A DNA stretch of 63,917 nt, counting the filler, from Octopus bimaculoides (taxonomy: Eukaryota): assembly GCF_001194135.2 (NCBI RefSeq). It is 5 parts of 5 records of this genome, joined end to end, with 100 filler letters (N's around TTAATTAATTAA, not from the genome) between each part and the next. Parts side by side here need not be neighbours in the genome. Positions count along the whole stretch, not along the records: positions 15,731 to 36,348 come from NC_069005.1; 4 more parts are not named here. The stretch is one strand, 5' to 3'. Below are positions 2,143 through 33,540 of the stretch, piece by piece (within the stretch, counting starts at the first letter, position 1; the number at the start of each line of letters is the position of its first letter). The notes under the pieces were generated by a model. The model worked only from the letters and a program-made list of their open reading frames with translations, did no database searches and had not been told where the DNA came from. The translations under genes and the position numbers were made by a program.

Positions 2143-2221
2143 ATCAGAATATGTCTATGGCCGATACACCACAGTACTTGTTTTGTTAAACTGTTGTCCT
2201 CTGCATTTTATCAGCTTAGAC

Positions 2222-2408: not shown

Positions 2409-2489
2409 TATTAGACAAAAGTGAAAGTATTTATGAAAGTCCGAGTACATGAAAGCTAAAAAATTTTTAAATCAACAATATGTGATCCT

Positions 2490-3086: not shown

Positions 3087-3129
<43 letters not shown>

Positions 3130-3803: not shown

Positions 3804-3857
<54 letters not shown>
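3087..3857. repeat. (TA)n and (CA)n microsatellites flanking an assembly gap
   Basis: Directly visible. The ORFs listed across this interval are N-run artefacts. Confidence 0.95.
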
Positions 3858-3859
<2 letters not shown>

Positions 3860-3942
3860 GAAAACTACACGTTAACAATGTTTCAGTAGAATAAGTATAT
3901 ATCGTTATGCATTTAATATGTGTGCATATATATGTGATTATA

Positions 3943-4790: not shown

Positions 4791-4801
4791 TATATTCTTT
4801 T

Positions 4802-4975
4802 CTACTCTAGGCACAAGGCCCGAAATTTTGTGGGGAGGAGGCCAGTCGATTAGATCTTCTCTAGTACGCAACTGGTACTTAATTTATCGACCTCGAAAGA
4901 ATGAAAAGCAAAGTCGACTACGGCGGAATTTGAACTCAGAACGTAAAGTCAGACGAAATACCGCTAAGCCACTCT
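4802..4975 (-). mobile_element. tRNA-derived SINE family A (tail-2 variant)
   Basis: Reverse complement of the recurrent ...GAGTTCAAATTCCGCC...GACTTTGCCTTTCATCCTTTCGGGGTCGATAAATTAAGTACCAG... unit with a B-box-like GTTCAAATTCC; more than 10 copies in the window. Confidence 0.85.
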
Positions 4976-4989
4976 GTAAATTGCGCTAG

Positions 4990-5870
4990 GTCAAAAGTTT
5001 TACAATATTATTTGCTTCGTTTGTCAAGTTACGACAAAAGCAGCCTAGCATTCAAAGTAAAGGCCATCATGTGGCATCACCTGAAGCCACCTTTCTGCCA
5101 GTTCTTTGATTTCACGCTGATACCAGTTTTGTCCTTCAAGGTGAATAACTCTTTCATTGAAGCTTCCACTGCCTCTTAGTTGATGAAGCGTCGCGAGCGC
5201 AGGAAGTGAGCCATGGATCGGGACAAGTAATAATCCGAGAGAGACATTTTTGCGCAATGCTAATGTGCAGAAGCAGTGGTTAAGCAAGGGCCAGCTTCTG
5301 GGACCTGTCGCTAAACATGGGCATTTCGAACACAAAATGACGCTCTCCGTCTGGTGGAATTATGAAGAGATAATCCACTACAAGTTTGTTCCTGCCGATC
5401 GAACCATTGAAGTCAACCTGTGTTCCGAATAGCTGAAGCGAATGTATGCCATTGTGCTGCAAAAGTACTAGGCATTGGTTAAAAGAAAGCGAAGACTTCT
5501 GCAACAAAGACATCGCAAGACCTCAAAACACACGAACGACCCGGAATAAAGTCCAGGAATTTGAGAGAATTAAATTGAAGCTACACCCATGTAGTCCGGG
5601 CCTAGCTCCCTCGGATTATTACTTGTTCCCATCCATAGCTTACTTCATGTGCTCTCAGCGCTTCACCAACCAAGAAGAGGTGGAATCTTCGGTGAAGGAG
5701 TTCTTCGTCTCGAATGACAAGAACTGGTATCAGCGTGAGTTAAAGAACTGGCAGAAAGTTGGTTTCAAACAGTGCAACATGACATTCTATACTTCGATGC
5801 TGGATTGCTTTTGTCGTAACTTGTCGAATGAAGCAAATAATATTACCAAAATATTGCAAAACTTCTGGCT
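4990..5870 (+). mobile_element. Rearranged mariner (DD34D-like) transposase fossil with an inverted copy of its own 3' end
   Basis: The forward remnants KMTLSVWWN and LHPCSPGLAPSDYYLF...KNWYQRELK are mariner motifs (PYSPDLAPSDY). Interval 4990-5245 is the reverse complement of ~5610-5870. Confidence 0.8.
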
Positions 5871-6040
5871 CAAGTGTGTGTGAGTGTGTGTATGTGTATG
5901 TGTGTGAGTGTATGTGTGTGCATGTGTGTGTATGTGTGTGTGTGTGTGAGTGTGTGTATGTGCATGTGTGTACCCTTCATGACATCAACATTAAGGCACT
6001 CTAGTTATTGTTTTCAAATTTTGGCACAAGAACAACAATT

Positions 6041-6275
6041 TCGGGATGAGTCGATTACATCGATACCACTGTTCAAATAGTACTTATTTAATCGGCCCCG
6101 AAGAGATGAAAGGCAAAGTTTTTTCGTTCTGCGTTCAAATTCCGCCAAGGTCGAATTTGCCTTTCATCTTTTCGAGATTGACAAGATAAAAACCGGTTGA
6201 GTACTGGCATCGATGTAATCGACTAACCCCCTCCCCTGAAATTGCTGGCTTTGTACTAAAATTTGAAACCAATAT
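6041..6275. mobile_element. Two SINE family A fragments, head-to-head
   Basis: 6041-6118 is the minus-strand core; 6133-6275 is the plus-strand B box plus core. Confidence 0.75.
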
Positions 6276-8639
6276 TTCACCTAACTCTAAGACAGTGTAC
6301 AGTGCCCATGTCAGAGAGAATAATACCACTTCTAATCAGGATAAAATATAAAGAGATAATAAGCATGCTAACGGTTCGATTGCTTGAGATACTTGTACGT
6401 GTGGGGTAGATATAACCGCTAGGTCAGTGCTTATGATCTTTGCAAGTCCTCTAAGATCGGTTAGCTTGAGTTAAGGTTCTGTTCAACCTGTTGTGTGCCA
6501 ACACCTGCTGATGGAGATTCCAGAGGGACGATGTACTGGAAAGAAAGGGATGGAGACAGTAGTTATTGGTAGTCCAGGGATGGTGGACTTGATATGGGTG
6601 AGGGGAGGTGGAGAGACGAGCGAGTTGGAAGTGGCTGAGTAGTGGAAGTTTGAGTCCAGCCGAATTTGAGGAACAGAGGACAAATTAGTAGCAATAGAGA
6701 GAGTGAGGTGGGAGAGAGGGAGAAAGAGGCGGAGAGGAGGTTGTACACATGTAGGCCAGAGGCCGGGGTGTGTCTGTCAGGAATTGAAAGTCTGTTAGGA
6801 ATAGAAAGCGCTGTGCACTATCTTCGACTATCAAATTTCACTTACGTGGGACTGGTCAACATGTGGTGACAATAGAAGGACACTTACTTAGCGAGTCATG
6901 CAGTAGAATCGAATTCTAAACTACTTGGTTATAAAGCAAACTTCTTAAGCACGAATTCAAAGAGATTTTAGGTTTTTGAAAAAACTAGACACCTTCTACT
7001 GTCTCTGTTTACAAATTCGTTAATTGTTCTGTATTGTTTTTCTTTTACATCTAAATTAGTTTTTTTGAAAGTGAAATAGACTTGGCACGATATTCATTAC
7101 CTTTTATCTCTCAATAAGTATTACGCTTAAACCACTAAGCGATGTGTCTCGCTTTACTTACACCAATAAAACACCATAGTAATAGAATTGCAAAACCAAA
7201 TGAATAATAATGGAACAAAGTTCAATTCTTTTCAATGGTAGTCCCAACACGCATCCCAATTTAAAACTAACATCTGGTCCTTGTTGGCATTTAGCAGAAT
7301 TCACACTGTTGAAAACTCTAGAGCCGTAGCTTGATTCCCTTTCAGCTCACGTTTTTTTTTTCTTCTACATACGTCAAATTCGGATATCAATATTACACTC
7401 GTCTAACAATAAATTAAAATTAGTAGAGTAGTGCACTGGTCAGATTTAAAATTGTATTGGAACGAAAAGTTAATCTGATTACCTAGTATTTTTTTCTGTT
7501 GCATTCAATTATATGGTTTAATATTCTCTGCGTCGCGGTCGTCGTCGTCGTCGCCATTGACGTCATCGTTGTCGTCGTCGTTGCTGTTGCAAACCCCCTA
7601 CATTATAGCTCTGATCGGGTAGGTTTACGGCCTATGATTAAGAGCAACCCGACCGGTCTTTCTGTGCACCAGGAGACTACATCATCTAGTGTGTACTTTC
7701 TTTTAAGACGGCAGGCTGTAATTTGAGGGAGATTTGTGTGACTATTTCTCGTTTGTCGATCGAGCGGCTGTGTCAACCAAGGTAGTGGCGCGCTACTAAG
7801 GAATCTGAGAATTACTAAGGTATTGTAAAGTTTAAAATTGCTACCATTTCTAGGCTAATCTTAAGAATCAGAAGTAATGTTTACGAATGAACACTTCAGT
7901 TATTAATACTGCCATTGAATACTTCCGTTCTTTATCGAAGTCCGATAAACATAAAATCCTTAATTTTTAAAATCATGCCTTCAACAATGATAATTTCACA
8001 AAATTTCTATTAAAAAGAATAAGGCGAAACAATTTGTTCCAACATAGATGAATTTCTGTACAGGCATTTGTTTGATCTTGCAACCGTAATACATTAGAGA
8101 AGTTTTTAAAAAAATTCTTATGAAACTATGGTTAAGCAGTTCACAGAATCTAAAAATTGCATTGGAGCGAAAAGCTAATTTGTGAATAACTGACATTTTT
8201 GTGTTTTACTCAGTTTTTTGGTTCAATACTCTCCAAGATGCTGTTGCTGTTGTTTTCCCATTGTTGAACTCACTAATGGGAGATATGCTGTTAAGTCAGT
8301 AAGTAAAGTCAGTAAGTTAAGTCAGTAAGTAAAGAATGAAATTATTAAGTAATAAAAGTATCATTCCCTTTGTTTCTTCATTTATATGCATTTTGATAAA
8401 TATCCAATAAAAAAATTTCTATCACTTTCTCTGAATCGATTGCTCAGGTCTGGCCATAATCAACTTAATTATAGCATGTAATCAATTATTTATATTTAAA
8501 AGAAACTAAATTTGTTTTATACGCCATTCAGTTGAAACTAGGCTTTTCTTTTTACGTTAGTTCTTCATTAAAATAATAAGAATATGTAAATATTGATACT
8601 GTATCAGCTCAATGAAAAGAGAAAATTTCGAATAATTAC

Positions 8640-15730: not shown

Positions 15731-15862
15731 GTCAGGCGGTACTGGCAACGGCCACGCTCAAAATGGTGTCTTTTATGTGCCACCCGCACAAGAGCCAGTC
15801 CAGGGGCACTGGCAACGATCTCGCTCGAAAATCCTATGAAGGCCAGTCAGGCGGTACTGACG
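15731..15862. mobile_element. RTE-type 3'-tail-related repeat fragment
   Basis: Contains TTTTATGTGCCACCCGCAC and an internal direct repeat of GTCAGGCGGTACTG (15731 and ~15847). It resembles the 3' segment of RTE-associated repeats, such as 56200-56400. Confidence 0.4.
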
Positions 15863-16025
15863 ACGGGCTTCTTTCAGTTTCCGTCTACCAAATCCACTCA
15901 CAAGGCTTTGGTCGGCCCGAGGCTATAGTAGAAGACACTTGCCCAAGGTGCCACGCAGTGGGACTGAACCCAGAACCATGTGGTTGGTAAGCAAGCTACT
16001 TACCACACAGTCAATCCTACGCCTA
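15863..16025 (-). mobile_element. CORE-like tRNA SINE family B
   Basis: The minus strand has A-box-like TGACTGTGTGG, B-box-like GGTTCAGTCCC and the CORE-like signature CCTTGGGCAAGTG. It is near-identical to 17985-18148 and 32678-32832. Confidence 0.85.
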
Positions 16026-16027
16026 TA

Positions 16028-16125: not shown

Positions 16126-16730
16126 GGCAGCGAGCTGGCAGAAACGTTAGCACGCCGGGCGAAATGTTTTTCAGTATTTTGTCTGCCGTTATGTTTTGAG
16201 TTCAAATTCCGCCGAGGTCGACTTTGCCTTTCATCCTTTCAGGGTCAATAAATTAAGTACCAGTTACGCACTGGGGTCGATGTAATCGAGTTAATCCTTT
16301 TGTCTGTCCTTGTTTGTCCCCTCTATGTTTAGCCCCTTGTGGGCAATAAAGAAATAAGANNNNNNNNNNTGAGTTCAAATTCCGCCGAGGTCGACTTTGC
16401 CTTTCATCCTTTCAGGGTCAATAAATTAAGTACCAGTTACGCACTGGGGTCGATGTAATCGAGTTAATCCTTTTGTCTGTCCTTGTTTGTCCCCTCTATG
16501 TTTAGCCCCTTGTGGGCAATAAAGAAATAAGAAACATTAGCACACCGGCCAAAATACTTAATGGTATTTCGTCTGTCTTTATGTTCTGAGTTCAAATTCT
16601 GCCAAAGTCGACTTTGCCTTTCATCCTCTTGGGGGGGTCGATAAAGTAAGTACCAGTTGCGTACTGGGGTTGATCTTATCAACTGGCCTCCTCTCCCAAA
16701 ATTCCAAACCTTGCGCCTATAGTAGAAAAG
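16126..16730 (+). mobile_element. SINE family A dimer (tail-1 unit then tail-2 unit), with an assembly-duplicated stretch at 16370-16530
   Basis: Head GGCAGCGAGCTGGCAGAAACGTTAGC, B box GAGTTCAAATTCC, tail-1 ...CCCCTTGTGGGCAATAAAGAAATAAG, then a second unit ending ...CCTTGCGCCTATAGTAGAAAAG. Confidence 0.85.
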
Positions 16731-16989
16731 AATAGTTCTACTTTATGACTTGTTTGACATTGTCAAAAACAAACATCGCACATGTATACATTTTCTGTCT
16801 GTCTGTCTGTCTGTCTCTCTCTCATTCTCTTCTTCAGACATCCATAAGCACGTCTTATGGACACTTGACCTACATATTTCATACTATCTCCTCCAATTAG
16901 TCAACTTATCTCTGTCTATGAACAACACGAATGCACACACTTCAAATATTCATTGCTTTCTTATCTACAGTTAAACAGCCATCACTATA

Positions 16990-17209: not shown

Positions 17210-17417
17210 TGTGGGTCATTCAGAGTTTTCTTTCCTCAGTCAATACAAATTGGATGGGGTTGGAGGGTCGGATGGCAGTGGCTGAGAATGGCAAATGATG
17301 CCTGGATTGAAGAGCTGGAGGAATGCAAGAAGAAACCAGTAACAGCATAGTAATAGTGATGCAGCTGACATGGGGAGGAGAAGGGAGGGATGATGTGTTT
17401 GGGCAGGCCACAGGAGA

Positions 17418-17462
<45 letters not shown>

Positions 17463-17984
17463 NNNNNNNNNNNNNNNNNNNNNNNNNNNNNNNNNNNNNN
17501 NNNNNNNNNNNNNNNNNNNNNNNNNNNNNNNNNNNNNNNNNNNNNNNNNNNNNNNNNNNNNNNNNNNNNNNNNNNNNNNNNNNNNNNNNNNNNNNNNNNN
17601 NNNNNNNNNNNNNNNNNNNNNNNNNNNNNNNNNNNNNNNNNNNNNNNNNNNNNNNNNNNNNNNNNNNNNNNNNNNNNNNNNNNNNNNNNNNNNNNNNNNN
17701 NNNNNNNNNNNNNNNNNNNNNNNNNNNNNNNNNNNNNNNNNNNNNNNNNNNNNNNNNNNNNNNNNNNNNNNNNNNNNNNNNNNNNNNNNNNNNNNNNNNN
17801 NNNNNNNNNNNNNNNNNNNNNNNNNNNNNNNNNNNNNNNNNNNNNNNNNNNNNNNNNNNNNNNNNNNNNNNNNNNNNNNNNNNNNNNNNNNNNNNNNNNN
17901 NNNNNNNNNNNNNNNNNNNNNNNNNNNNNNNNNNNNNNNNNNNNNNNNNNNNNNNNNNNNATATATATATATATACATATATAC

Positions 17985-18148
17985 GACGGGCTTCTTTCAG
18001 TTTCCGTCTGCCAAATCCACTCACAAGGCTTTGGTCGGCCTGAGGCTATAGTGGAAGACACTTGCCCAAGGTGCCACGCAGTGGGACTGAACCCGGAACC
18101 ATGTGGTTGGTAAGCAAGCTACTTACCACACAGTCACTCCTACGCCTA
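17985..18148 (-). mobile_element. CORE-like SINE family B
   Basis: Near-identical to 15863-16025; lies ~310 bp upstream of the large ORF. Confidence 0.85.
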
Positions 18149-18385
18149 TTTTAATTTTAATTGTTTGAGACAATGAAGTTTTGAGAAGCTAATATTTTAA
18201 CAGAAATAATAAATGTTGTTTCGGATCTCATTTCAGGTTTTGTATGAAATTGGTAAACGTCCTACTCATTCCAGCATGGAAAACAGTCGTTAAATGTTGA
18301 TGATGATGACGATGATGATGAAGCAGTGATAAATTTCATTTGAAAGATGAGAAGGAAACAAAAAAACTAAAGCAAGAAAAAAAAA

Positions 18386-18422
<37 letters not shown>

Positions 18423-18462
18423 AGTTCATATAAAAAAAAAAGAGTTACTAAACATTGCAAAA

Positions 18463-21400
18463 ATGCTGAAGATTAAGAAGATTAACGAAGAAAACAAAAT
18501 GTTGGCTATCGACATTCCTTCTAAAGAACATAACATGTTAATTAGTGCTAAAGCATTTGACGAGGTGTCAATTCTTGGTAAAGTGTGCAATAAAGGCAGC
18601 ACTAAGAAAGCCGATAAAGAACAGAAAATAACTAAACTATCTCTTCATCATATCATCACATGTACTCGAACATTAGTTAAAGGACAGTACATCGATATGT
18701 TTATAGACTTTGTAAAGGAGAAGTGTAATGACATACAAAGTATGGGGTTAGACAGATATCGTTTCTTAAGAAATATCAAACGCGAAATGAAACACTTTCT
18801 GGAATATACTAAAAAAAACAATGAGTTTGTTCTCCAGAACCTTGACTGGTTTCATGGCCAACTGTTTGACATATATACGGCCAGCAATCCCTACGCCCGC
18901 AAGAGCATCACAATGCCAAAGCCATTGCTTAAATTTCACCCACTTTCATCAGTTGAGTGCAGGAAATTAAAGTTTGAAGTTTCTGGGGAAGACCTTCCCA
19001 ACTTCATATCACATGTTGTCCCAACCAGTGGCGGAATAGTAACATATACATCACATATGATGACAATATGTTATGCCACAACCGATGGTAGTTCCAATGT
19101 TGTACATTGTCCTTCTCCTATCACAGACATGGACAGAATTGGTGAAGACTCTGTGTTGGCCACAATTCCATTTAAGAAGAAAATTCTCGTCATTAGCCCC
19201 ACAAGCTGTAACATGAAAACACTGGATTATGGTTTTCATAAGATTTCTTATTTCAAACAATCTACCTTTCTAGGTACTGAACTATTCGGTAAGATAATGT
19301 ATCTCATAGATTGGGATGACAATCAAGTCAAAGAAAAATTTAGCCTGAAACACATACCTACAAATATAGTTGTAGGTCCACAATATCGCATCTTGGTGAC
19401 ATCAGCAAATATAAACACAATTAGTTGTTACGATCTAGATGGCAGACAACTGTTTCATCTGAGTACCCAATCTACTGACATTCAAATAGACCTCGCTGTC
19501 TATCAAAACTATTTTTATGCCGTACAAGGAAATATCATTTACAAGATTTCACCAACTGGTGCCATGTCACAGAGAGAACTTAAGATAAAAGCTCGATATA
19601 TTTCTCTGTGTACAAATAATATTCTTTTGGTTGATTATGCCGGTGTTGTACATACCACAAGGACAGATAGTAATTTTTGGCCTCGGTTTTCTAACCACCA
19701 ACAAGAATGCACTCCCTCTTTGAAAGACCAAATTGACATCGATGACCCTTACAACATTAGAAAGATTCTACCTATGTCAGCCTCTTCAGTATTAATTGTA
19801 TATGAGGATCTAAAAGTTATGTTAATCATTCACGAAGGGCAACGGTTTGGTAAAACGTTTTTAACATTTAAGAGCAAACCTTCTGTCTTTTGTAGAGTAG
19901 ACTCAAACAGATTTCTCGTCCTGTTTCGTGAAGACCGTAAACTTCAGTATATTACATGCCCCCAACTAACTGAAGGCCATTTAATAGGCGTCGATAGTGA
20001 TTATAGTCAAATGTGTCATATAGTATCAAATAAGTGTTTGGCTCTGACCACCAGTGGAAACAAAGCGGAGGTACATATCTTATTGATTAAGGAGGACAAC
20101 GTTGAGACTATAAACAGAATTTCATTGGAACATGGTGATGTTGTCATTGCTGCAACTCCAGTGAATTTTGTAGTTGCAGACAAGAGGGAACATAGACTAT
20201 TATTTTTTTCAAGTTCTGGTGAAAGACTTTTTAAAAGACTCATTGATTTCAATGGCTATCCTCATTATATCTTTGCAGACAATTTATACTTCTATGTTAT
20301 CTTCAGAAGAGAGTCTATGATGACATGTTACGATATAACTGGAGAAATGAAATGGCAGTTGAAACTTCCTTCAAATTTTAGCCTTGACAGTGCTGTTTTC
20401 CAAGGAACTGCTTACGTACTGGATTTCCTACTGAGTAGGGTTCTTCTTTACAAGTATCATAATGCATCCCGTTGTTATTCAAACTTTAAAAACCCTTACA
20501 TTAGAAATTTAGATATACGACTCAAAGAAAATAGAAAAATTCTCATTGCTGGAATGTATCATCTGCCAAATGGACAGCGGGTGGTGTCTGACATTAACAA
20601 CAATTGCTTGTTATACATTTGTAATGAAGGAGATATTGTAGCCACGTTATATTTGCCATCTGTTGCAACAGATATATGTCAATGGGATTGTAATCAAATA
20701 GGTGTCATATTGCCCTTGGAGAAACAATTACGGCTTATAGGAAACCTGTCTAAGAAAGTTAGAATTGTAGCATTAAGCCACCCTTATGTAAAGGTGCGTA
20801 AGCTGGGTGAAGGTCAGATTGTTTGCTATTGTGATAAACCATCACATTTAGACATTGTATCGATTGAAAACCACAACCAAGGGAAAGTAATCTCTACAAT
20901 CTCTATTCCTTTTGTACTCAAGTCATTAGCAGTAGAAAATGACACGCAAAATGTATTGATTGTGGCTAAGGAAAAAGTATTTCTTTACAAGACTACTACT
21001 ACTACTAGGAGGAGGAGGAGGGGGAGTAGGATTAAAAAGAAGAAGAGAAGCATGATCCCCAGTGTTTTACTGTCCCAAGTGAAACCTCCACCCAATCTCT
21101 TTGGTGGATGTATTGATAATATGTTTGTTTATCTGATAGACAACAGTCGTATGTTTGCTATAAATGATCATAACTTGGTGGTGACAGATCATGTTGCAAA
21201 CAAACAGCTTAATATGCACATTGATTTGGTAGATGTATTTTCTAGAAACATTTGTGTTAGTGAAATGTTTTCTTCAACAGTACATGTAGAGGATCTGACA
21301 GTTTCTGATAAACCTCATTATTTTGTTGTTCCTCGATGTTCCCGAGACAAAAAACAGCCAATGTGCAAGGATTTGGTTATTACTGAAAATAACCTGATTG

Positions 21401-24024
21401 CAATATTCGACAGCAGCAATGCAAACATTAAGATATTAACATTTGATGGTCATCTTGTTGACTCTATCAAAACGAATGTTATCCCTCGACATATGTGTCG
21501 CTGGCATTCAAACACACTGGTTATTACAACTCAAAAACACCAGTTGTTGACATTAAAAGTGAACTTTCCATTGATCTTGACAAGTTACCGGACGAAAATT
21601 AACTATGAATATATCGCTTCCTTCTCAGATAATCAATTGGTGTGTAATAGAAATAATGATAAAAATACTTTGTTTATCATTGGCATTGATGAAATGTCTT
21701 CAACTGTGAATATAACGAAGAAAATAAATATCACTAAGATAGTGAAAAACAGCCATTATAACATAACTGATATCGCAGTTACAGTTAATGATGACATTAT
21801 TGTCAACATTGGTCCTCTTGTCATATTCTTCAACCGTAATGGTGAATGTTTCTGTTCATTTAGTCAATATTTCGATACTCAATATGACTGCATGGGAATT
21901 GATGATACTTATCTGTACCTTTACGGGTTTTGTGATATATATGGTTATGGTACATATAATTATATTGCCTGTTTGTCACTGACTGGAGAATACAAAAAAG
22001 TATTTTCAAAGATAAGGGATTATAAACATAGAATAAATATTGAAAAATTAAATTGTAATGGTCCAAGATTTGTTGGACATAACCACTCCTATCGGAGAAC
22101 GAGTAATTTGTATGTTGAAGGTTTGCTTAACGTTAGTCGCGAAAGATTCACTGTTAGTCGTTTACTAACAAACAACTGTCCTGTTCAAGTAAAAGATATT
22201 GATATCTCTACTAATGGACAGACAGTTGTGTGTGAAAAAGCTAATAGTGGCAATGTTAAAATATTTGATAGACGTGGAGAGCTGCTATGTCACAGAGATC
22301 TTGGAACTTTAGTCGGTGGGGTATGTTTTACAGAAGAAAGAAATATAATGGTTACAGTCCCTAACAGACAAGAAATATTTCAACTAAGTCAACAAGATTT
22401 GGTGTTACATAAAGTCTGGCAAAGTCCTGCACCTTACAGTGCAATATGGAGAAAAGCGGGGAACATTTACTGTTGTGTGCATACTAATTTGACTGAATAT
22501 TATAGCATAAAGATTGATGGAGACCAACTGAAGGTTCTGGATTATGTGTCGTTATTAATGATTGATTCTGGTCTTCATTTCCCTTCCATTACATCTCAAA
22601 TGAAGAAGGAAATATTCAGTAATGAATTAATTGATAAGTTGAAATACAGCGAAGGAGGAGAAAGAAAATGTAAATCAGGTGAAATAGTTGGTAAAGGTAG
22701 ATTGAAGGCGAGAAATGGTAATTATATGGCAGCGAGTATGTTGGGAAGCGATGAAATAACTGTGTGGAGAATGCCATATAGAACAGCAATGTATCCTGCT
22801 TCCATTCCTCCTTGTGATAAACCAGTTGATTTCAATGACCTCCGAAAACTAATTATGTTAGATGCTAATATTGCTGTGTTCATGCTAATAGATACTGTCA
22901 TAGTAATTACCACAACAGGTAATGTACTTCAACATAAACAATTACAAAAAAAGCCATCACCAAAAGACATATGTCAGTGGACCGATGAACATTTCATAGT
23001 CACGTCTGGGAAACAACTGACATTCTTCAACAGAAATCTCTCCCTTTTAAAAACCATCAGCACCGAAAAATATTACAATAGGATTTATAAAAAGAATGAC
23101 AATCAACTTTTGTGTGCATTTAGTACTGATGTATATAATCCTTCAGTCGAGTTTTCATCTTTAGACATAGTTGAGATTCATGGTGACACATGTAAACATA
23201 TTCGTCGAGTGTGTTCTGGGAAATATGTAATGACAGCAATTGGTGTCACATCTAGTGAAGACATTGTTGTTGTTACCAAAGGCAATGGCTATACTGTCTG
23301 TTTCTACAGAGAACATTTGGTCAGAAGGTTAAAAATTAATATAGAAGTAGAACCTGATCTAACTATACATGGTGAAAATGTTTATGTAACAGATGCAGAG
23401 AATGATATTTACCAAGTATCTGTGGATAGCATACAAGAAACATTTGAAGATGAGGATGAAGACCAAATATTTGAAGAGAGCGTTGATCATATATCTGTAG
23501 AAAGTGAAGATCAAATATCTGCAGAGAGTGAAGATCAAATATTTGAAGAGAGTGAAGATCAACTATCTGTAGAAAGCGAAGATCAAATATTTGAAGAGAG
23601 TGAAGATCAACTATCTGTAGAAAGCGAAGATCAAATATTTGAAGAGAGTGAAGATCAACTATCTGTAGAAAGCGAAGATCAAATATTTGAAGAGAGTGAA
23701 GATCAACTATCTGTAGAAAGCGAAGATCAAATATTTGAAGAGAGTGAAGATCAACTATCTGTAGAAAGCGAAGATCAAATATTTGAAGAGAGTGAAGATC
23801 AACTATCTGAAGAGAGTGAAGATCAAATATTTGTAGAAAGCGAAGATCAAATATCTGTAGAAAGCGAAGATCAAATACCTGACAATAAACCACACCTATT
23901 CCTCAGTGGGGATGATGTTGAAGCCATCAATGTTCTTGGGCTTGCTGTTTCTGACAGTTCTGTTGTAATTTTTGGACCAGTTCATGGAAACCAGTCTTAT
24001 TGTTTTTTTCATTATGAGAGATAA
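18463..24024 (+). CDS. Large uninterrupted ORF, 1853 aa: helical N-terminus plus six tandem NHL-like beta-propeller modules and an acidic repeat insert (uncharacterised)
   Basis: 5562 nt with no stop in AT-rich DNA, from ATG in AAAATG context (18463). The 41 upstream codons in the track run through poly-A/(TA)n and are unlikely to be coding. NHL-like blades include DISTNGQTVVCEKANSGNVKIFDRRGELL, HLPNGQRVVSDINNNCLLYICNEG and VITENNLIAIFDSSNANIKILTFDGHLV. Module starts recur near 18997, 19747, 20536, 21355, 22180 and 22822. Coding status is high confidence; the fold is inference. Confidence 0.9.
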   Translation: MLKIKKINEENKMLAIDIPSKEHNMLISAKAFDEVSILGKVCNKGSTKKADKEQKITKLSLHHIITCTRTLVKGQYIDMFIDFVKEKCNDIQSMGLDRYRFLRNIKREMKHFLEYTKKNNEFVLQNLDWFHGQLFDIYTASNPYARKSITMPKPLLKFHPLSSVECRKLKFEVSGEDLPNFISHVVPTSGGIVTYTSHMMTICYATTDGSSNVVHCPSPITDMDRIGEDSVLATIPFKKKILVISPTSCNMKTLDYGFHKISYFKQSTFLGTELFGKIMYLIDWDDNQVKEKFSLKHIPTNIVVGPQYRILVTSANINTISCYDLDGRQLFHLSTQSTDIQIDLAVYQNYFYAVQGNIIYKISPTGAMSQRELKIKARYISLCTNNILLVDYAGVVHTTRTDSNFWPRFSNHQQECTPSLKDQIDIDDPYNIRKILPMSASSVLIVYEDLKVMLIIHEGQRFGKTFLTFKSKPSVFCRVDSNRFLVLFREDRKLQYITCPQLTEGHLIGVDSDYSQMCHIVSNKCLALTTSGNKAEVHILLIKEDNVETINRISLEHGDVVIAATPVNFVVADKREHRLLFFSSSGERLFKRLIDFNGYPHYIFADNLYFYVIFRRESMMTCYDITGEMKWQLKLPSNFSLDSAVFQGTAYVLDFLLSRVLLYKYHNASRCYSNFKNPYIRNLDIRLKENRKILIAGMYHLPNGQRVVSDINNNCLLYICNEGDIVATLYLPSVATDICQWDCNQIGVILPLEKQLRLIGNLSKKVRIVALSHPYVKVRKLGEGQIVCYCDKPSHLDIVSIENHNQGKVISTISIPFVLKSLAVENDTQNVLIVAKEKVFLYKTTTTTRRRRRGSRIKKKKRSMIPSVLLSQVKPPPNLFGGCIDNMFVYLIDNSRMFAINDHNLVVTDHVANKQLNMHIDLVDVFSRNICVSEMFSSTVHVEDLTVSDKPHYFVVPRCSRDKKQPMCKDLVITENNLIAIFDSSNANIKILTFDGHLVDSIKTNVIPRHMCRWHSNTLVITTQKHQLLTLKVNFPLILTSYRTKINYEYIASFSDNQLVCNRNNDKNTLFIIGIDEMSSTVNITKKINITKIVKNSHYNITDIAVTVNDDIIVNIGPLVIFFNRNGECFCSFSQYFDTQYDCMGIDDTYLYLYGFCDIYGYGTYNYIACLSLTGEYKKVFSKIRDYKHRINIEKLNCNGPRFVGHNHSYRRTSNLYVEGLLNVSRERFTVSRLLTNNCPVQVKDIDISTNGQTVVCEKANSGNVKIFDRRGELLCHRDLGTLVGGVCFTEERNIMVTVPNRQEIFQLSQQDLVLHKVWQSPAPYSAIWRKAGNIYCCVHTNLTEYYSIKIDGDQLKVLDYVSLLMIDSGLHFPSITSQMKKEIFSNELIDKLKYSEGGERKCKSGEIVGKGRLKARNGNYMAASMLGSDEITVWRMPYRTAMYPASIPPCDKPVDFNDLRKLIMLDANIAVFMLIDTVIVITTTGNVLQHKQLQKKPSPKDICQWTDEHFIVTSGKQLTFFNRNLSLLKTISTEKYYNRIYKKNDNQLLCAFSTDVYNPSVEFSSLDIVEIHGDTCKHIRRVCSGKYVMTAIGVTSSEDIVVVTKGNGYTVCFYREHLVRRLKINIEVEPDLTIHGENVYVTDAENDIYQVSVDSIQETFEDEDEDQIFEESVDHISVESEDQISAESEDQIFEESEDQLSVESEDQIFEESEDQLSVESEDQIFEESEDQLSVESEDQIFEESEDQLSVESEDQIFEESEDQLSVESEDQIFEESEDQLSEESEDQIFVESEDQISVESEDQIPDNKPHLFLSGDDVEAINVLGLAVSDSSVVIFGPVHGNQSYCFFHYER
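23452..23880 (+). repeat. In-frame coding minisatellite, 24-nt unit (48-nt higher-order), ~18 units of ESEDQ(I/L)(F/S)(E/V)
   Basis: GAAAGCGAAGATCAAATATTTGAAGAGAGTGAAGATCAACTATCTGTA is repeated near-perfectly in the centre and degenerates at both edges. Confidence 0.95.
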
Positions 24025-24349
24025 ATAGTTGTATAAATTTTTACAGTTGTTGTTGTTACAAATATCTGCTACCACATCTGCTGACTAACAATTATTCTTT
24101 TAGCATTCTTCATTAATCTGTACACACACACACACACACACATGTATATGTGCTTATATGTGTATGAAAGCATGTGTGCATGTACATGTATGTATGTAGG
24201 CAGGTTGGTATGCATATGTGTATGTATGTACATATGTATGTGTGTGTACATGTGAGCACATAAGTGGAAAAAATAGTACTCAAATACCAAAGGTAGAGTA
24301 ATATACTTTTATTAAAGCTGCAAAATTATCACGAGACTCTTGCCCAGAG

Positions 24350-24475
24350 TATCATGCTCCTGTTCGTCAGGACTTATTCTTTGTAAGCCTAGTACTTATT
24401 CTATAATCTCTTTTGCCGAACCGCTAAGTTACAGGGACGTAAACACACCAGCATCGGTTGTCAAGCGATATTGGG
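24350..24475 (-). mobile_element. Short interspersed repeat family C
   Basis: Reverse of GTTTACGTCCCCGTAACTTAGCGGTTCGGCAAAAGAGA..ATAGAATAAGTAC. Further copies occur at ~35990-36165, ~49528-49700 and ~52780-52930 (+). Confidence 0.7.
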
Positions 24476-24950
24476 GGGGACAAACATACACACACACACA
24501 CACACACATATACATATATACGACAGGCTTCTTTCAGTTTCCATCTGCCAAATCCACTCACAAGGCTATGGTAGAAGACACTTGCCCAAGGTGGCATAAA
24601 GTGGCAAATTCTCTGCTCAGCTTTCTCTGTCATGGTCAATACGACGATCACACGCTACACACATTCCTCCTAAGCACTGCTGTAAACAGCGGAAGTGAGC
24701 TAGAACATTAAAACTGAGTGTGTATGCAAAGTAGAAGTTCAGGTCAATTTCTACCAAGCGGCTTCACTCTGCATGCATTAGCTTCGTTACTATGGCAACA
24801 CATATAGATCATACACTAGATAACGCACACATATACACTTAGACCTTATAAATTTTTCAAGGGATGCAACTCTCCTACAGTACAACGAGTCTTTCCCCTT
24901 AGATTTATTCACTTTTTACCCCCCCCCCTTTTTCTTTACGAATTTAGTGA

Positions 24951-25061
24951 GGCAAGCTGGCGGAACCGTTAGCACGCCGGGCGTTCCGAGTTCAAATTCC
25001 ACCGAAGTTGACTTTGCTTTTCGTCTTTTAGTGGTCGATAAAATAAGTACCAGTTGAGTAC
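24951..25061 (+). mobile_element. SINE family A, 5' part running into a gap
   Basis: GGCAAGCTGGCGGAACCGTTAGCACGCCGGGCG..GAGTTCAAATTCC head. Confidence 0.75.
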
Positions 25062-25578
25062 NNNNNNNNNNNNNNNNNNNNNNNNNNNNNNNNNNNNNNN
25101 NNNNNNNNNNNNNNNNNNNNNNNNNNNNNNNNNNNNNNNNNNNNNNNNNNNNNNNNNNNNNNNNNNNNNNNNNNNNNNNNNNNNNNNNNNNNNNNNNNNN
25201 NNNNNNNNNNNNNNNNNNNNNNNNNNNNNNNNNNNNNNNNNNNNNNNNNNNNNNNNNNNNNNNNNNNNNNNNNNNNNNNNNNNNNNNNNNNNNNNNNNNN
25301 NNNNNNNNNNNNNNNNNNNNNNNNNNNNNNNNNNNNNNNNNNNNNNNNNNNNNNNNNNNNNNNNNNNNNNNNNNNNNNNNNNNNNNNNNNNNNNNNNNNN
25401 NNNNNNNNNNNNNNNNNNNNNNNNNNNNNNNNNNNNNNNNNNNNNNNNNNNNNNNNNNNNNNNNNNNNNNNNNNNNNNNNNNNNNNNNNNNNNNNNNNNN
25501 NNNNNNNNNNNNNNNNNNNNNNNNNNNNNNNNNNNNNNNNNNNNNNNNNNNNNNNNNNNNNNNNNNNNNNNNNNNNNN

Positions 25579-25860
25579 GAAAACACCTAAAAGCTCCACG
25601 AGGCTCCGGCAGGGGATGGTGGCGAACCCTGCTGTACTCTTTCACCACAACTTTCTCTCACTCTTACTTCCTGTTTCTGTTGTGCCTGTAATTCAAAGCC
25701 TTGTCACACTCTGTGCCACGCTGAATATCCCCGAGAACTACGTTAAGGGTGCACGTCTCTGTGGAGTGCTTAGCTACTTGTACGTTAATTTCACGAGCAG
25801 GCTGTTCCGTTGATCGGATCAACTGGAACCCTCGACGTCGTAAGCGACGGAGTGCCAACA
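25579..25860. mobile_element. Interspersed repeat family E (~280 bp, non-coding)
   Basis: A reverse-complement copy lies at 31526-31765 (GGTTCCAGTTGATC...ACGTGCAAGTGG...GTGTGACAAGGC). The class was not determined. Confidence 0.7.
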
Positions 25861-26720: not shown

Positions 26721-28144
26721 AGTATATAGTCCATTTTTGTATTATAGTGCATTGTTGTACCATTCAAAACTTGTTATTCTTTACAAACGATACACAATGC
26801 TTCAAGCGAACTACAATACTCTCTTACTCCTTCAGTTTTGGAGAAACCTAAAAGTGATCCGCAGAAGAAGTAAGGCTACTCAGTTATGGAGATGCACTGA
26901 GAAGGTGTATATGTTTGAGAAAGAGAGAACTGAGAACGTCATCGAATTTCGAGTCATCTTTTGGCTCAGTGTTGACAGCACAACTCTCTTCGACGTTGTG
27001 TCTGAGTGATCCTCCAACTTTCTACTGAACAACGATAGTATCTACATGTTTGTAAAGATGGGAGGTATACTGGATTACCCCGGATAACCTTGGATGTCCT
27101 GGGTGTCCTGAACAACCAGCTCATCAGGAAGTCTAGAAAGATCAGACAGAACCTGCTGTACTGTGACTAAGTTTCCCGAACATCTACGGCTCACCACAAC
27201 ACAGCTTGATTTTGAACTTTCTACCAGTACAAAGATAAAGGAATGTATTTATGTCCAACTTAAGCTGGATTAGACGTTCTAACAAAACATCTACGTTAAG
27301 TTAGATATAAAGCGACCTGTTGTAAATCGGTTGAATGGGGGGGGGGTAAAGCGTTGACATGGACACGAGATAAGGTGTCCGCCACTGAATTATCAGTGCC
27401 CTTCATGTAACGGGTATCTGCGGTGAAATGCGAGATAAAATCGAGTGCCTGATATCATATCTCGAGGGGAATATTTATCTGTTTTAAATTGCAATACGAA
27501 TGTCAATGGTTTATAATCGATGAAAATTGTGAAAATGTCGTCCTTCCAAAAAAAAAGGGCTGAAAATATTTCACAGTTAGATAAGTAACNNNNNNNNNNN
27601 NNNNNNNNNNNNNNNNNNNNNNNNNNNNNNNNNNNNNNNNNNNNNNNNNNNNNNNNNNNNNNNNNNNNNNNNNNNNNNNNNNNNNNNNNNNNNNNNNNNN
27701 NNNNNNNNNNNNNNNNNNNNNNNNNNNNNNNNNNNNNNNNNNNNNNNNNNNNNNNNNNNNNNNNNNNNNNNNNNNNNNNNNNNNNNNNNNNNNNNNNNNN
27801 NNNNNNNNNNNNNNNNNNNNNNNNNNNNNNNNNNNNNNNNNNNNNNNNNNNNNNNNNNNNNNNNNNNNNNNNNNNNNNNNNNNNNNNNNNNNNNNNNNNN
27901 NNNNNNNNNNNNNNNNNNNNNNNNNNNNNNNNNNNNNNNNNNNNNNNNNNNNNNNNNNNNNNNNNNNNNNNNNNNNNNNNNNNNNNNNNNNNNNNNNNNN
28001 NNNNNNNNNNNNNNNNNNNNNNNNNNNNNNNNNNNNNNNNNNNNNNNNNNNNNNNNNNNNNNNNNNNNNNNNNNNNNNNNNNNNNNNNNNNNNNNNNNNN
28101 NNNNNNNNNNNNNNNNNNNNNNNNNNNNNNNNNNNNNNNNNNTG

Positions 28145-28714: not shown

Positions 28715-29120
28715 TTCCAGACACAAGGCCCGAAATTCTGGGGGAGGGAGCCAGTCGATTAGATCGACCCCAGTACGCAACTAGTACTTGATTTAGTGAC
28801 TACGAAAGGATGAAAAGCAAAGACTACCTCGGCGGAATTTGAACTCAGAACGTAACGGCAGACGAAATACCGCGAAACATTTCGCCCGGCGTGCTAACGT
28901 TTCTTATTTCTTTATTGCCCACAAGGGGCTAAACATAGAGGGGACAAACAAAGACAAAGTGATTAAGTCGATTACATCGACCCCAGTGCGTAACTGGTTC
29001 TTATTTAATCGACCCCGAAAGGATGAAAGGCAAAGTCGACCTCGGCGGAATTTGAACTTAGAACGTAGCAGCAGACGAAATATCGCTAAGCATTTCGCCC
29101 GGCGTGCTAACGTTTCTGCC
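28715..29120 (-). mobile_element. SINE family A dimer (tail-1 unit then tail-2 unit)
   Basis: On the minus strand, a head at ~29120 runs to tail-1 AATAAAGAAATAAG at ~28895, followed immediately by a second GAAACGTTAGCACG unit ending GGGCCTTGTGTCTGGAATAGAG. Confidence 0.85.
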
Positions 29121-29226
29121 AGTTAATAATATCTATTGCAGCCATGCAGAACAAAGAAGTAAAAAAAAAAAAAAAATCTGCGCCAGGGGCAGCTACTCTG
29201 TATTTACTCATTTCATTGTTCACATC

Positions 29227-29428
29227 ATGTCGGATCATAAATCGCCACGTTGTAATTCATCACATTTGAAACTTATCATTAACGCTGATGATGTCGGTTA
29301 TAGCCAGATCAGAGACGAAGGTATTGCCGAGTGCATAGACGCCGGTTCAGTGACCAGCTGCTCTTTATTAGTCAACGGTGTCTCTGCTAAGTCTATTATT
29401 ATAGCACGGTGTCCCAAAGTCTCACTCG
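29227..29428 (+). CDS. YDJC: YdjC-family carbohydrate deacetylase, exon 1
   Basis: MSDHKSPRCNSSHLKLIINADDVGYSQIRDEGIAECIDAGSVTSCSLLVNG contains the YdjC LIxNADDxGY...RDEGI...GxVTSxSLLVNG motif. Donor G|GTATAT, phase 1. Confidence 0.9.
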
Positions 29429-30070
29429 GTATATTTATTGTTTACATATCTCACATAATAACATTCTCGCTGGACAATCTCGCCAAGTCAAAACAATGTA
29501 GTTTTGACTCGACATTTGTTTATTCTGTTCTTTCTTTGTTTTCTTTTTAGCTCGTGTTGGACACACTTTGCAAATTATATATTGCATGTTATTTACTTTT
29601 GTCGTTTTTTAATATTTTTATTAATATAAATCTAGTCGGAGCATGGCTGTGCGGTTAAGAAGCTTGCTGGTAAATTTTCTGATTAACACCCGCACGATTT
29701 TCACTAGAGTGTTCGGGTAGGGGTTAGTGTTTTAGGGTTAAGGTGGATCACAGTCGGTTTGGGCGATTACGATCCTCTCGTTCGGTGTGCATTTCACGTA
29801 ATTCTCAGGTAGAATTTAGAATCAGCCTGATAGTATATACCAAGGTGTGTCTTTGGATTCCAGGTAAAACCCACCAGACGTTCGTCTATATAGGTTCTGT
29901 CAAGCCAATTTCACTCGCAAACTGAGTCTTCTTGGGATTTCATGCTTACAAAGCTAACGTTTTAATCATTCAACCAGATTGTACAACCACCTCCCCCTCT
30001 CTCTCCTTCTCTGTATATGACTGCAATGTTATGACTGAAACATGTAAAAGATATATATATATAAATATAT

Positions 30071-30324: not shown

Positions 30325-30731
30325 TATNNNNNNNNNNTTTCTCGTCACCTAATACAAGAGCACTCTCCTATCATTTGTATCAATTTATGAAACTAGATGC
30401 ATTGTTGTAACTGAGTTAGTAATTTCCTTTTTAATTTCTAGGACTTCATCTGTCAAAATATTTTCTTTCTCCCCTGTCTAAAAATGTTGATTTTCATTTT
30501 TCATTTTCAATCACAGGATCTATAAAGATAATGTCACCATCATCGTCATTTCATCGTTATCATTTTTCACATCCACTTCTCCATGCTTGCATGGGTCAGG
30601 CAACATTTTTTTCTATGGCCTGATTCTTTTCTCGTCACCTAATACAAGAGCACTCTCCTATCATTTGTATCAATTTATGAAACTAGATGCATTGTTGTAA
30701 CTGAGTTAGTAATTTCCTTTTTAATTTCTAG

Positions 30732-30889: not shown

Positions 30890-31258
30890 TTTTCTGCTCT
30901 GGGCGCAATGCCCGAAATTTGTGGGGAGGGGGCCAGTTGATTAGATTGATTAGTATCAGTATGCAGTATTGATCAGTACCAGTATGCAACTGGTACTTAA
31001 TTTATCAACCCTGAAAGGATGTTTCTTATTTCTTTATTGCCCACAAGGGGCTAAACAGAGAGGATACAAACAAGGACAGACAAAGGGATTAAGTCGATTA
31101 CATTGACTCCAGTGCGTAACTGGTACTTAATTTATCGACCCCGAAAGGATGAAAGACAAAATCGACCTTAGCAGAATTTGAACTCAGAACGTAACGGTAG
31201 ACGAAATACCACTAAGCATTTCGCCCGGCATGGTAACGTTTCTGCCAGTTCGCCACCT
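30890..31258 (-). mobile_element. SINE family A dimer (tail-1 unit plus 5'-truncated tail-2 unit), in YDJC intron 2
   Basis: Same order as 16126-16730 and 28715-29120. Confidence 0.8.
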
Positions 31259-31424
31259 TATACAGTCTTAATTATGTCTGTCTAAACTTTACTATGTATA
31301 TTTGTTGTTCTACCATCTCTTTTTCTCTATACCTTCTGCTTCCACTGAAGGTAGTTTACGATAGTCTGCTTTTGTGAAAGCTGTTGTGTATGCAATAATG
31401 GCCAATTCATTTCCTTAATGATAG

Positions 31425-32112: not shown

Positions 32113-32677
32113 GTGAGCGCAGACAACTTTCTGCATTCATTTTACATTCCCCCTCCCACATCTTTAAACTACCAAAGCCATCTCCCTTGCATCAAGTGGT
32201 TGCTGAAGAAATTTGTTTCACAACCAACTGGCTATGGCTTTGGCCCTGCTACGTGGCACCTCCTTCAATAGCCGCATTCTATTCTAGCCTCAGGTTGACA
32301 ATTGCCTTGCGGGTGAAATTTGCTAGATTGAAACTGTAAGGGAGTCTGGCATGTGTGCGTATATTTATGTGCATACATACATACATTGACGGGCTGATTC
32401 GTTAAAAGTATGCAAGTTCCAAATGTGAATTCGTCTGTGTTAACTACATCCCAAAGATGGAGCCTTGTATCTTTGTTGGAAACCGGCTCCCTTCCCAAAT
32501 TAAAAAAATAGAAGAGACGTACATAGATATGTGCATGCATGCTCACTCGCTCGCTCGCATGCACACGCAAACACACACACATATTTTATTTGTTTCAATC
32601 ATTAGACTGGCCATGCTGTGGCACCGCCTGGAAGAATTTTTAGTTTAATGACACACATATGTATATACATATATACA

Positions 32678-32832
32678 ACGGGCTTCTTTTTAGTTTCCGT
32701 CTACCAAATCCACTCACAAGGCTTTGGTTGGCCCGAGGCTATAGTAGAAGACACTTGCCCAAGGTGCCATGCAGTGGGACTGAACCCGGAACCATGTGGT
32801 TCGTAAGCAAGCTACTTACCACACAAACACTT
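32678..32832 (-). mobile_element. CORE-like SINE family B, in YDJC intron 3
   Basis: Near-identical to the 17985-18148 copy. Confidence 0.85.
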
Positions 32833-32916
32833 CTGTGCCTATATTTACAATAAAAATATATCTCAAATATATCTCAATGAAACCATATTTTTTTTTTAAA
32901 TTTCTGGTTTTGGTAG

Positions 32917-33094
32917 CTATAATGAAGATTTTGGCCCCTCAAATGGTTTCAAATGCCATAAACATCACAAGAATCCCTCATGAAAGACAACTAAACTCAT
33001 GTCACTGGTTATCACAGACATCTAGAAGCTTTTTCGAAAGGGTAATTGATGATGCCCTTGTATCTAAAGACATCTGCTTGAAAAATGGTATTCA
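32917..33094 (+). CDS. YDJC: YdjC deacetylase, exon 4
   Basis: Acceptor TTTGGTAG|CT. Reads (A)IMKILAPQMVSNAINITRIPHERQLNSCHWLSQTSRSFFERVIDDALVSKDICLKNGI, with TRxPxE and W positions like other YdjC proteins. Donor CA|GTAAGT, phase 2; phases match both neighbours. Confidence 0.8.
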
Positions 33095-33104
33095 GTAAGT
33101 TTCT

Positions 33105-33540
33105 CTTAAATCTCCTGCTACTCTTCTGGATGGTCTCCTTGTTTAAGTTGGTGAATGCTACCATAATCCTTGCCTTTAGTTCATCTTTGGTGTTACAAGA
33201 AGTTTTGTTGGTCTCTCGCTCAACTGCACCCCGAACATAGTAATCAAGGGGGTTGCAGTGTGGGGAGTTAGGTGGCCAGACGTTAGGGGTGATGTGGTCG
33301 CAGAAATCATCTGACAGCCATGACTGGGTTCTCCTGCTTGTGTGGCATGGTGCAGAGTCCTGTTGCCAGCCTTGGGGCCTTCCAGCAGCTACCCTCTTGA
33401 CCCAGGGTAGCACTACCTCCTCCAGGCACTTGATGTAGGCCTTCATGTTGAGTCCGAGGTTGTGTGGGGAGATGAATGGAGGCATAATGTTGCCATCACA
33501 TGTGATCACTCCAAACACCATGATGTTGACTGGATGTTTG
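33105..33540 (-). mobile_element. Tc1/mariner DD37D (maT-type) transposase fragment in YDJC intron 4
   Basis: QQDSAPCHTS...WPPNSPHCNPLDY has exactly 37 residues between the second and third catalytic D. Confidence 0.85.

Follow-up and report, generated by a model that had tools for sequence, protein, structure and literature searches.

TRIM-NHL proteins (TRIM2, TRIM3, TRIM32/Thin, TRIM71/LIN-41, Brat and Mei-P26) use a six-bladed NHL propeller as their ligand-binding unit, and NHL propellers are well-studied RNA- and protein-binding units. To our knowledge, in animals these propellers occur once per protein. Several propellers in one chain, serving as binding platforms, are described in other proteins: DDB1 has three, LRP1, LRP2 and LRP5/6 are built on YWTD propellers, Apaf-1 is a tandem WD40 protein, and Utp21 and the IFT-A subunits are further cases. 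Here we analyse a 63,917-nucleotide stretch of Octopus bimaculoides DNA (hereafter the window; positions count along its full length), in which an intron-free open reading frame (ORF) lies at positions 18463-24024 of the + strand. We consider it likely that this ORF is a functional intronless gene encoding six consecutive NHL-type beta-propellers, a multivalent binding scaffold without a catalytic domain. We are not aware of another animal protein that consists of six NHL propellers only, no search by architecture having been made.

In comparison with TRIM-NHL proteins, the octopus protein lacks the RING, the B-box and a recognisable coiled coil, would hold six propellers instead of one, is left unscored by the Pfam NHL model, is restricted to octopods and cannot be an E3 ligase alone. 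The similarity with DDB1, the LRPs and the tandem-WD40 proteins is one of layout; they differ in having WD40-like or YWTD blades, with two to three propellers or propellers separated by EGF modules, and no sequence relationship to DDB1, LRP, Utp21, IFT-A or Apaf-1 was detected. NHL propellers are also found outside the TRIM context, in NHLRC2, NHLRC3, the teneurins and the PAL domain of PAM, each with one propeller plus other domains such as a thioredoxin-like domain, a YD shell or a catalytic site (see also PMC6107167). None of these four was among the hits of our analysis.

The + strand frame is free of stop codons from 18340 to 24024, that is, over 1894 codons, and its first ATG, at 18463, opens a protein of 1853 amino acids (aa) followed by the stop. 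The probability of such a run by chance, given the local base composition and a stop frequency of 0.067 per codon, is ~1e-57, which rules out a chance ORF. The frame corresponds to a called single-exon gene of assembly GCA_001194135.2 (chromosome CM046625.1, ~28.666-28.672 Mb), and the 5.56-kb stop-free, intron-free frame of the original prediction is thereby borne out. Its orthologue in O. sinensis (P0002) is single-exon as well and shares 84% protein identity. Over window positions 18144-24370 the two species are 89.8% identical in nucleotide sequence, and the gene flanks are collinear with the O. sinensis locus, the orthologues being syntenic. The parts of the gene are as follows (percentages are hhalign probabilities against the propellers of TRIM-NHL proteins; AF2, AlphaFold2; pLDDT, predicted local distance difference test; pI, isoelectric point):

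18463..24024, + strand: coding sequence (CDS), single exon, 1853 aa, ~212 kDa, pI 5.8
18463..18996, + strand: N-terminal region, aa 1-178, basic (pI 9.4), predicted helical, no RING or B-box
18997..19746, + strand: putative NHL-type propeller module 1, aa 179-428, core 179-397; 93.4%, E 2e-7
19747..20535, + strand: putative NHL-type propeller module 2, aa 429-691, core 431-687; 94.0%
20536..21354, + strand: putative NHL-type propeller module 3, aa 692-964; 97.7%, E 1e-12
20992..21051, + strand: basic low-complexity loop TTTTTRRRRRGSRIKKKKRS, aa 844-863, within module 3; AF2 pLDDT low
21355..22179, + strand: putative NHL-type propeller module 4, aa 965-1239; 99.0%, E 4e-18; clearest NHL signal
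22180..22821, + strand: putative NHL-type propeller module 5, aa 1240-1453; 94.2%, first half only; least certain module
22822..23442, + strand: putative NHL-type propeller module 6, blades 1-5, aa 1454-1660; 97.3%
23434..23877, + strand: acidic coding minisatellite, aa 1658-1805; Tandem Repeats Finder 23438-23882; repeat family D1
23887..24021, + strand: C-terminal blade, aa 1809-1853; four predicted strands, AF2 pLDDT about 70-81

By homology, the six modules are NHL-type propellers, in agreement with the original prediction of six NHL-like modules: each of them matches the TRIM-NHL propeller alignment at 93-99% probability, always in register. The link with TRIM-NHL proteins surfaced only through an exhaustive HMMER search, in which a profile of aa 1-1190 was compared with 1.84 billion representative proteins; k-mer-prefiltered searches, with the single sequence and then with the family alignment, retrieved Octopus proteins only. 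The HMMER search gave 34 hits, the strong ones being octopod paralogues. We examined five weaker hits (E 1.5e-7 to 1.1e-4). Their alignments fall on modules 3 and 4, and their domain composition is RING + B-box + NHL, B-box + NHL or NHL alone; they come from the cuttlefish Acanthosepion pharaonis, the mussel Potamilus streckersoni and transcript assemblies. All remote hits that bear Pfam domains are NHL and/or RING/B-box proteins. The nearest relatives of every module (hhalign 93-99%) are the cuttlefish protein P0049 (CAE1315789.1), the mussel protein P0051 and the Logan transcripts P0050 and P0052, which share with the octopus modules the blade-2 signature P..(I/M)C.W......V.(L/T)P. They differ from the octopus protein in being 280-660 aa long with one propeller; P0049, P0051 and P0052 keep a B-box, and two of these three also a RING. 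The N-terminal part of P0049 matches the RBCC region of TRIM28, and its propeller matches the NHL domains of TRIM2/TRIM3 (~2e-11) as well as those of Brat, TRIM71 and Thin; judged by these matches, it is a bona fide TRIM-NHL protein.

Further evidence comes from a module-4 profile built with octopod sequences only (A5). When compared with all sequences of the Protein Data Bank (PDB), it retrieved only NHL propellers at E<0.01 (Thin 6.3e-6, Brat 3.1e-5, TRIM71 1.7e-3, TRIM3 4.3e-3), the first WD40 protein being RACK1 with E 0.68. Single-sequence searches of Pfam and the PDB gave noise only (LIF-R_Ig-like, Semenogelin and, at the acidic repeat, a designed helical protein). The Pfam NHL model PF01436, run on seven module-4 sequences, gave weak hits in two paralogues (best E 2e-4) and none in that of the window; since this model misses the window protein, the NHL assignment relies on profile methods. 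No Pfam match to WD40, YWTD or Kelch repeat models was found in the window protein either. In the comparison with TRIM-NHL propellers, the default hhalign settings aligned about half the length of modules 3 and 5, and the N-terminal region and the C-terminal tail were unmatched.

The limits of the modules were also consistent between methods. Mapping on a reference propeller places them at aa 179-397, 431-687, 693-959, 965-1209, 1241-1450 and 1456-1660. The profile-aligned starts, at nucleotides 18997, 19753, 20539, 21355, 22183 and 22828, fall at most 6 nt (two residues) from those originally proposed (~18997, 19747, 20536, 21355, 22180 and 22822). We aligned 20 homologues, cut the alignment at the proposed boundaries and compared the pieces with each other by hhalign. 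Module 3 aligned with module 6 at 96.8% (E 2e-10), and module 4 with module 6 at 95.6% and with module 5 at 79%, all in register; weaker in-register alignments were found for modules 3 and 4, 2 and 6, and 2 and 4. Outside the acidic tail, a sensitive self-BLASTP of the protein did not reveal any internal repeat, and the sole DNA-level repeat within the ORF is a 24/48-nt acidic minisatellite (23438-23882). The modules are thus too diverged for pairwise methods, and their relatedness is seen at profile level only, as had been anticipated from the lack of a DNA-level repeat. Module 3 is the most conserved in the family, with a mean identity of 49% across 7 lineages, the highest of any module, and it holds the densest run of invariant residues (aa 707-805). 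Modules 2-5 are basic (pI 8.5-9.3), and at the site of the basic loop of module 3 the paralogues carry R/S-rich or G/R-rich stretches.

We modelled the protein with AlphaFold2 in two halves, using 20-23 family sequences, and assigned strands by DSSP. Modules 1, 2, 4 and 6 and most of module 3 were predicted as all-beta with pLDDT of about 75-90. Modules 1 and 2 show 21-22 strands each (pLDDT about 76-89 and 70-87, respectively), module 3 shows 19, confident for aa 695-845 only, and module 4 shows 24 (about 75-87). Module 6 has 19 strands (pLDDT 80-93), to which the C-terminal blade adds 4, for a total of 23. Module 5 was predicted with 11 strands at low confidence; across most of its length the 10-residue blocks have a pLDDT of 24-54. 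Judged from strand counts, six-bladed closure of the propellers is likely. Foldseek searches of the PDB with both half models placed tandem-propeller proteins on top (E 1e-21 to 1e-13), namely IFT-A subunits, Utp21, LRP2, DDB1 and Apaf-1; as the ranking is driven by multi-domain length, Foldseek is unable to name the blade family. The repeated propellers that structure prediction was expected to reveal are supported by the models, both through all-beta modules and through matches to tandem-propeller proteins.

The whole window protein gave zero hits against Pfam, with no RING, B-box or catalytic domain, and precomputed Pfam domains were found on none of the family proteins. Regarding the parts that define TRIM/RBCC proteins, the Pfam scan of the window protein detected no RING finger; a B-box was found neither in it nor in the family members P0025, P0027 and P0030; and a coiled coil might be sought in four helices predicted within aa 51-140, but their pLDDT is <50 and comparisons with RBCC and PDB profiles were unmatched. 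The helices lie at aa 51-66, 75-93, 98-118 and 121-140, so that the expected helical N-terminus of ~180 aa holds as a prediction for residues 1-178, with the limit of this low model confidence. The region contains only 4 Cys in its 178 aa and closes with a conserved NPY...K(F/Y)(R/H) stretch, KFHPL in the window protein. It had no match in a Pfam scan or in a profile search of PDB chains, and hhalign detected no profile similarity with the RBCC regions of P0049, P0051 and P0052; in these comparisons the N-terminal region is an orphan. Neither a signal peptide nor a transmembrane segment was detected in the window protein, which suggests that it is probably cytoplasmic or nuclear.

All paralogues share an aligned start Met in an AAAATG context, and an in-frame stop is found 5-6 codons 5' of the start in the P0003 and P0004 loci and in four O. 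vulgaris copies. This makes it very improbable that an undetected RING exon lies upstream. In the window, an (AT)n microsatellite (18387-18423) and an A-rich tract just 5' of the ATG hold the upstream frame open; a (GA)n microsatellite lies farther 5' of the gene, at 17420-17462. The absence of RING, B-box and catalytic domains claimed at the outset is supported by the empty Pfam result, and the stops in the paralogues exclude an upstream position in the same exon.

Until now, the homologues of this family have been annotated solely as "uncharacterized" or "hypothetical". They form at least seven paralogue lineages with mutual identities of 25-55%, and the layout of N-terminus, six modules and C-terminal blade is common to all of them. 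Argonauta hians has two family proteins (1913 and 1925 aa) with the six-module layout as well, which indicates that the sixfold array predates the Octopus-Argonauta split. In agreement with the suggestion that the array is old and the family lineage-specific, the layout is the same in all paralogue lineages and in Argonauta, every multi-module hit among the 1.84 billion representative proteins belongs to Octopus or Argonauta, and no multi-module relative outside octopods was found among them. All six CDS with a colinearly translating model (P0002, P0003, P0004, P0005, P0006 and P0027) are single-exon, as is P0007, and the gene of the cuttlefish TRIM-NHL relative P0049 likewise has one exon, in keeping with an origin of the family from an intronless TRIM-NHL-like gene. 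One lineage has undergone expansion along a 29-Mb chromosome of O. vulgaris, on which many short gene models are found as well. The architecture is undescribed: no published description of the family was found in the literature, including by the NCBI LOC identifiers of six members. The novelty first proposed stands for the architecture and not for the gene itself, as the NCBI gene models are already public as "uncharacterized protein". The fold is a known one, the NHL propeller, and the novelty lies in its sixfold arrangement.

Some peculiarities of individual loci were also observed. The P0011 locus of O. vulgaris has a frameshift at about 2052-2059, due to either a pseudogene or an assembly error. 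In the P0009 locus (O. vulgaris, 1001-6784) an intron is annotated, yet the sequence is one uninterrupted ORF of 1927 codons; compared with P0005, it carries about 450 nt of extra sequence inserted in frame. Two O. vulgaris proteins named "E3 ubiquitin-protein ligase MIB2-like", P0039 and P0084 (CAJ1099278.1 and CAJ1099277.1), hold a family fragment (profile positions 132-260, E 8.5e-46) and are probably chimeric gene models that absorbed it.

Comparison with the O. sinensis orthologue, at a synonymous divergence (dS) of 0.14, supports the claim that selection keeps the frame open. A neutral sequence should have gathered about 36 nonsense substitutions, and 0 were observed (P=3e-16); for modules 4-6 alone, the probability of having none under neutrality is 9e-7. 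The ratio of nonsynonymous to synonymous substitution rates (dN/dS) that had been called for as a check is 0.58 overall, and the orthologue is intact. The constraint is uneven along the protein. The ratio of the proportions of nonsynonymous and synonymous differences (pN/pS) against the orthologue is 0.49, 0.42 and 0.33 for modules 1, 2 and 3, all significantly <1 (P=2.5e-5 for module 3), and 0.88, 0.68 and 0.85 for modules 4, 5 and 6. Modules 1-3 are under purifying selection. In six pairs among four recent O. vulgaris paralogues, pN/pS was 1.1-2.0 for module 4, with values up to about 2.3-2.4 across recent paralogues, about 1-6.5 for module 6, and 0.1-0.8 for modules 1-3; in the P0005/P0006 pair the excess over 1 was nominally significant for module 4 (P=0.013) and module 6 (P=0.027). 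For modules 4 and 6, the rate of evolution equals or exceeds the neutral one. In the same pair, module 1 has a dS of 0.72 and the rest of the gene about 0.03-0.06. This outlier of P0006 implies that family genes undergo gene conversion or are mosaics.

Between module 6 and the C-terminal blade lies the acidic repeat, with a unit of 48 nt or 16 residues in about 9 copies (SEDQIFEESEDQLSVE). It contains 65 D/E and no K/R, and it is predicted to be disordered (AF2 pLDDT about 26). The O. sinensis orthologue has a different acidic unit, SEDQISEE, and among the paralogues shown or aligned the repeat was found only in the O. bimaculoides/O. sinensis orthologue pair. The C-terminal blade, in turn, is kept in all paralogues (...VLGL.VS...FG......FF) and, in the predicted structure, probably completes the propeller of module 6. 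Given this position, the acidic repeat is best read as a lineage-specific expansion of the loop ahead of the last blade. The Argonauta hians proteins P0027 and P0057 have low-complexity expansions of their own, including an N-terminal ADNTRMV repeat, and module 6 of P0027 holds a proline/glutamine/tyrosine-rich repeat with units such as YTPPLQQ. These indicate that expansion of loop and terminal repeats recurs in the family.

A possible history for this gene may be the following. The source of the propellers would be an intronless TRIM-NHL-like gene of cephalopods, which had one propeller and would have shed its RING, B-box and coiled coil; the propeller would have multiplied to six before Octopus and Argonauta diverged, and the whole gene would then have duplicated into at least seven lineages. 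The resulting protein would consist of an orphan helical N-terminal region, six NHL-type propellers of about six blades each and a disordered acidic repeat before the last blade. As it has no catalytic or E3 domain, it most likely works by binding alone, and its function is probably that of a non-catalytic multivalent scaffold, an adaptor or a sequestering protein arranged as beads on a string. Propellers 1-3 are conserved and propellers 4 and 6 evolve fast, a contrast that points to variable recognition units on a conserved core, where propellers 1-3, above all propeller 3, may hold invariant partners and propellers 4 and 6 may contact variable ligands.

We count the existence of the gene, its architecture, the NHL homology, the taxonomic restriction and the module-specific selection as established by this analysis, and several points weigh against the reading as a whole. 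The gene is known here from its sequence and from predicted models alone. Even with the threshold relaxed to E<=10, PF01436 does not match the window protein, and its gathering score is not reached. The AlphaFold2 models were built on 20-23 closely related sequences and have a mean pLDDT of 58-62; they are poor in module 5, at the end of module 3 and in the N-terminus, and blade counts and ring closure depend on strand counts only. Foldseek on these multi-domain models favours WD40 multi-propeller targets and leaves the blade family unassigned. As for selection, modules 4-6 of the window gene are statistically indistinguishable from neutral, and the pN/pS values >1 are crude pairwise counts with nominal P values, uncorrected for multiple tests, from non-independent pairs in a family with gene conversion (module 1 of P0006).

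Among the explanations that compete with a multivalent NHL scaffold or would refine it, two concern what the propellers bind. Propellers 4 and 6 might diversify to recognise pathogen RNA or protein while propellers 1-3 signal or scaffold, as in an innate-immune receptor engaged in an arms race. Molluscs have expanded sets of TRIM-NHL-like genes, which are linked to immunity, and such a receptor would resemble the expanded TRIM and NLR repertoires. The birth-and-death pattern of full copies, a frameshifted copy and short models over one O. vulgaris chromosome points in this direction, together with the confinement of pN/pS >=1 to modules 4 and 6 and the mosaic or gene-conversion signal; however, selection tests of such a crude pairwise kind, ratios near 1 that relaxed constraint explains equally well, and values of 0.85-0.88, not >1, in the window gene itself leave us to regard this refinement as tentative and on the unlikely side. 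The further proposal that octopods evolved a new cytoplasmic class of pattern or ligand recognition, a TRIM-NHL protein without its E3 module, with a sixfold propeller, a conserved core of propellers 1-3, hypervariable heads 4 and 6 under diversifying selection and reshuffling among paralogues by gene conversion, is doubtful at present. Alternatively, the protein could be an RNA-binding post-transcriptional regulator or a ribonucleoprotein scaffold, with six units and no E3, that uses the top surfaces of its NHL propellers as Brat, LIN-41/TRIM71 and Mei-P26 do. The homology to the NHL domains of Brat and TRIM71 would fit, as would the basic character of modules 2-5, the basic loop of module 3 and the R/S-rich or G/R-rich stretches that paralogues have there, and the acidic disordered repeat could mask basic surfaces. 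Yet many NHL domains bind proteins and not RNA, the divergence is too great to map RNA-contact residues and net charge is weak evidence, so we also hold RNA binding to be unlikely as the specific function.

Other alternatives question the gene or its fold. Spliced upstream exons might add a RING, a B-box and a coiled coil and turn the protein into a TRIM E3 ligase; the window frame is indeed open for about 47 codons 5' of the ATG, and the orthologue is annotated as "isoform X1", implying alternative transcripts. This is very improbable given that the open stretch is (AT)n plus an A-rich low-complexity tract, that the paralogues share the start Met, preceded at 5-6 codons by an in-frame stop in the loci checked, and that no family member has RING or B-box Pfam hits. 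We see almost no room for propellers of another class (WD40, YWTD or Kelch) whose NHL likeness would be convergent blade chemistry. The WD40 and YWTD multi-propeller proteins among the top Foldseek hits and the silence of the Pfam NHL model would speak for it, but that ranking is driven by length, the profiles retrieve only NHL proteins at E<0.01 (RACK1 has E 0.68), the remote HMMER hits with Pfam domains are all NHL and/or RING/B-box proteins, and the hhalign matches are in register over most of the propeller length. Finally, being intronless and multicopy, with the same SINE-like (short interspersed element-like) sequence in direct orientation on both flanks and at least one frameshifted paralogue, the locus could be taken for a decaying retrocopy, a transposon-borne ORF or an annotation artefact without function. 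This explanation is largely refuted and deserves hardly any credence: the ORF is intact in two species despite a dS of 0.14 (P=3e-16; 9e-7 for modules 4-6), modules 1-3 are under purifying selection, the orthologues are syntenic, and the SINE on the flanks is common all over the window and in the other loci retrieved. A transposable-element or viral ORF was also considered and rejected, with no transposase, reverse transcriptase, integrase or capsid domain in Pfam and no inverted repeats.

Six NHL propellers with nothing else recognisable constitute a natural experiment in multivalency, in an architecture wholly missed by current domain databases, for which Pfam is blank. Being octopod-only, intronless and repeatedly duplicated, with unequal evolution of its propellers, the family offers a tractable case of how lineage-specific families arise from a conserved domain, and also a route into what "uncharacterised" cephalopod genes do. 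Furthermore, if it were true that the variable propellers recognise pathogens or RNAs, they would represent a new kind of invertebrate recognition receptor, a propeller-based counterpart of the immune repertoires based on leucine-rich repeats (LRR) or TRIM-SPRY proteins.

The gene lies amid repeats, as first described, with SINE-like copies and satellite arrays on its flanks. The SINE-like element flanks it in direct orientation at 17971-18084 and 24508-24604 (95% and 86% identity). Further copies are found at ~15860-16027 and 32651-32845 and many more in all Octopus loci fetched; we read the flanking element as an abundant repeat and not as a mobile-element boundary. A satellite-like repeat of ~184 nt occurs at 16130-16735, 28745-29122 and 31021-31260, and it forms long arrays 5' of the O. 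sinensis orthologue (L001, about 2262-4867). Runs of N are present at 17463-17960 (498), 25062-25578 (517) and 27590-28142 (553), and two shorter runs of 10 bases at 16360-16369 and 30328-30337. Of the long runs, the first two give rise to artefactual six-frame ORFs on both strands (17220-18061 and 24916-25648), and all three long runs to low-GC dips in the composition profile. Downstream, positions 29104-29550 (+ strand) hold the first coding exon of a neighbouring YdjC-like gene (PF04794, E 5.7e-12), called as a gene from ~29227. Additionally, a 169-aa ORF at 33012-33521 (- strand) weakly matches a DDE_3 transposase (E 0.0018, which misses the Pfam cut-off); it is probably what remains of a Tc1/mariner-type element within the region of the YdjC gene.

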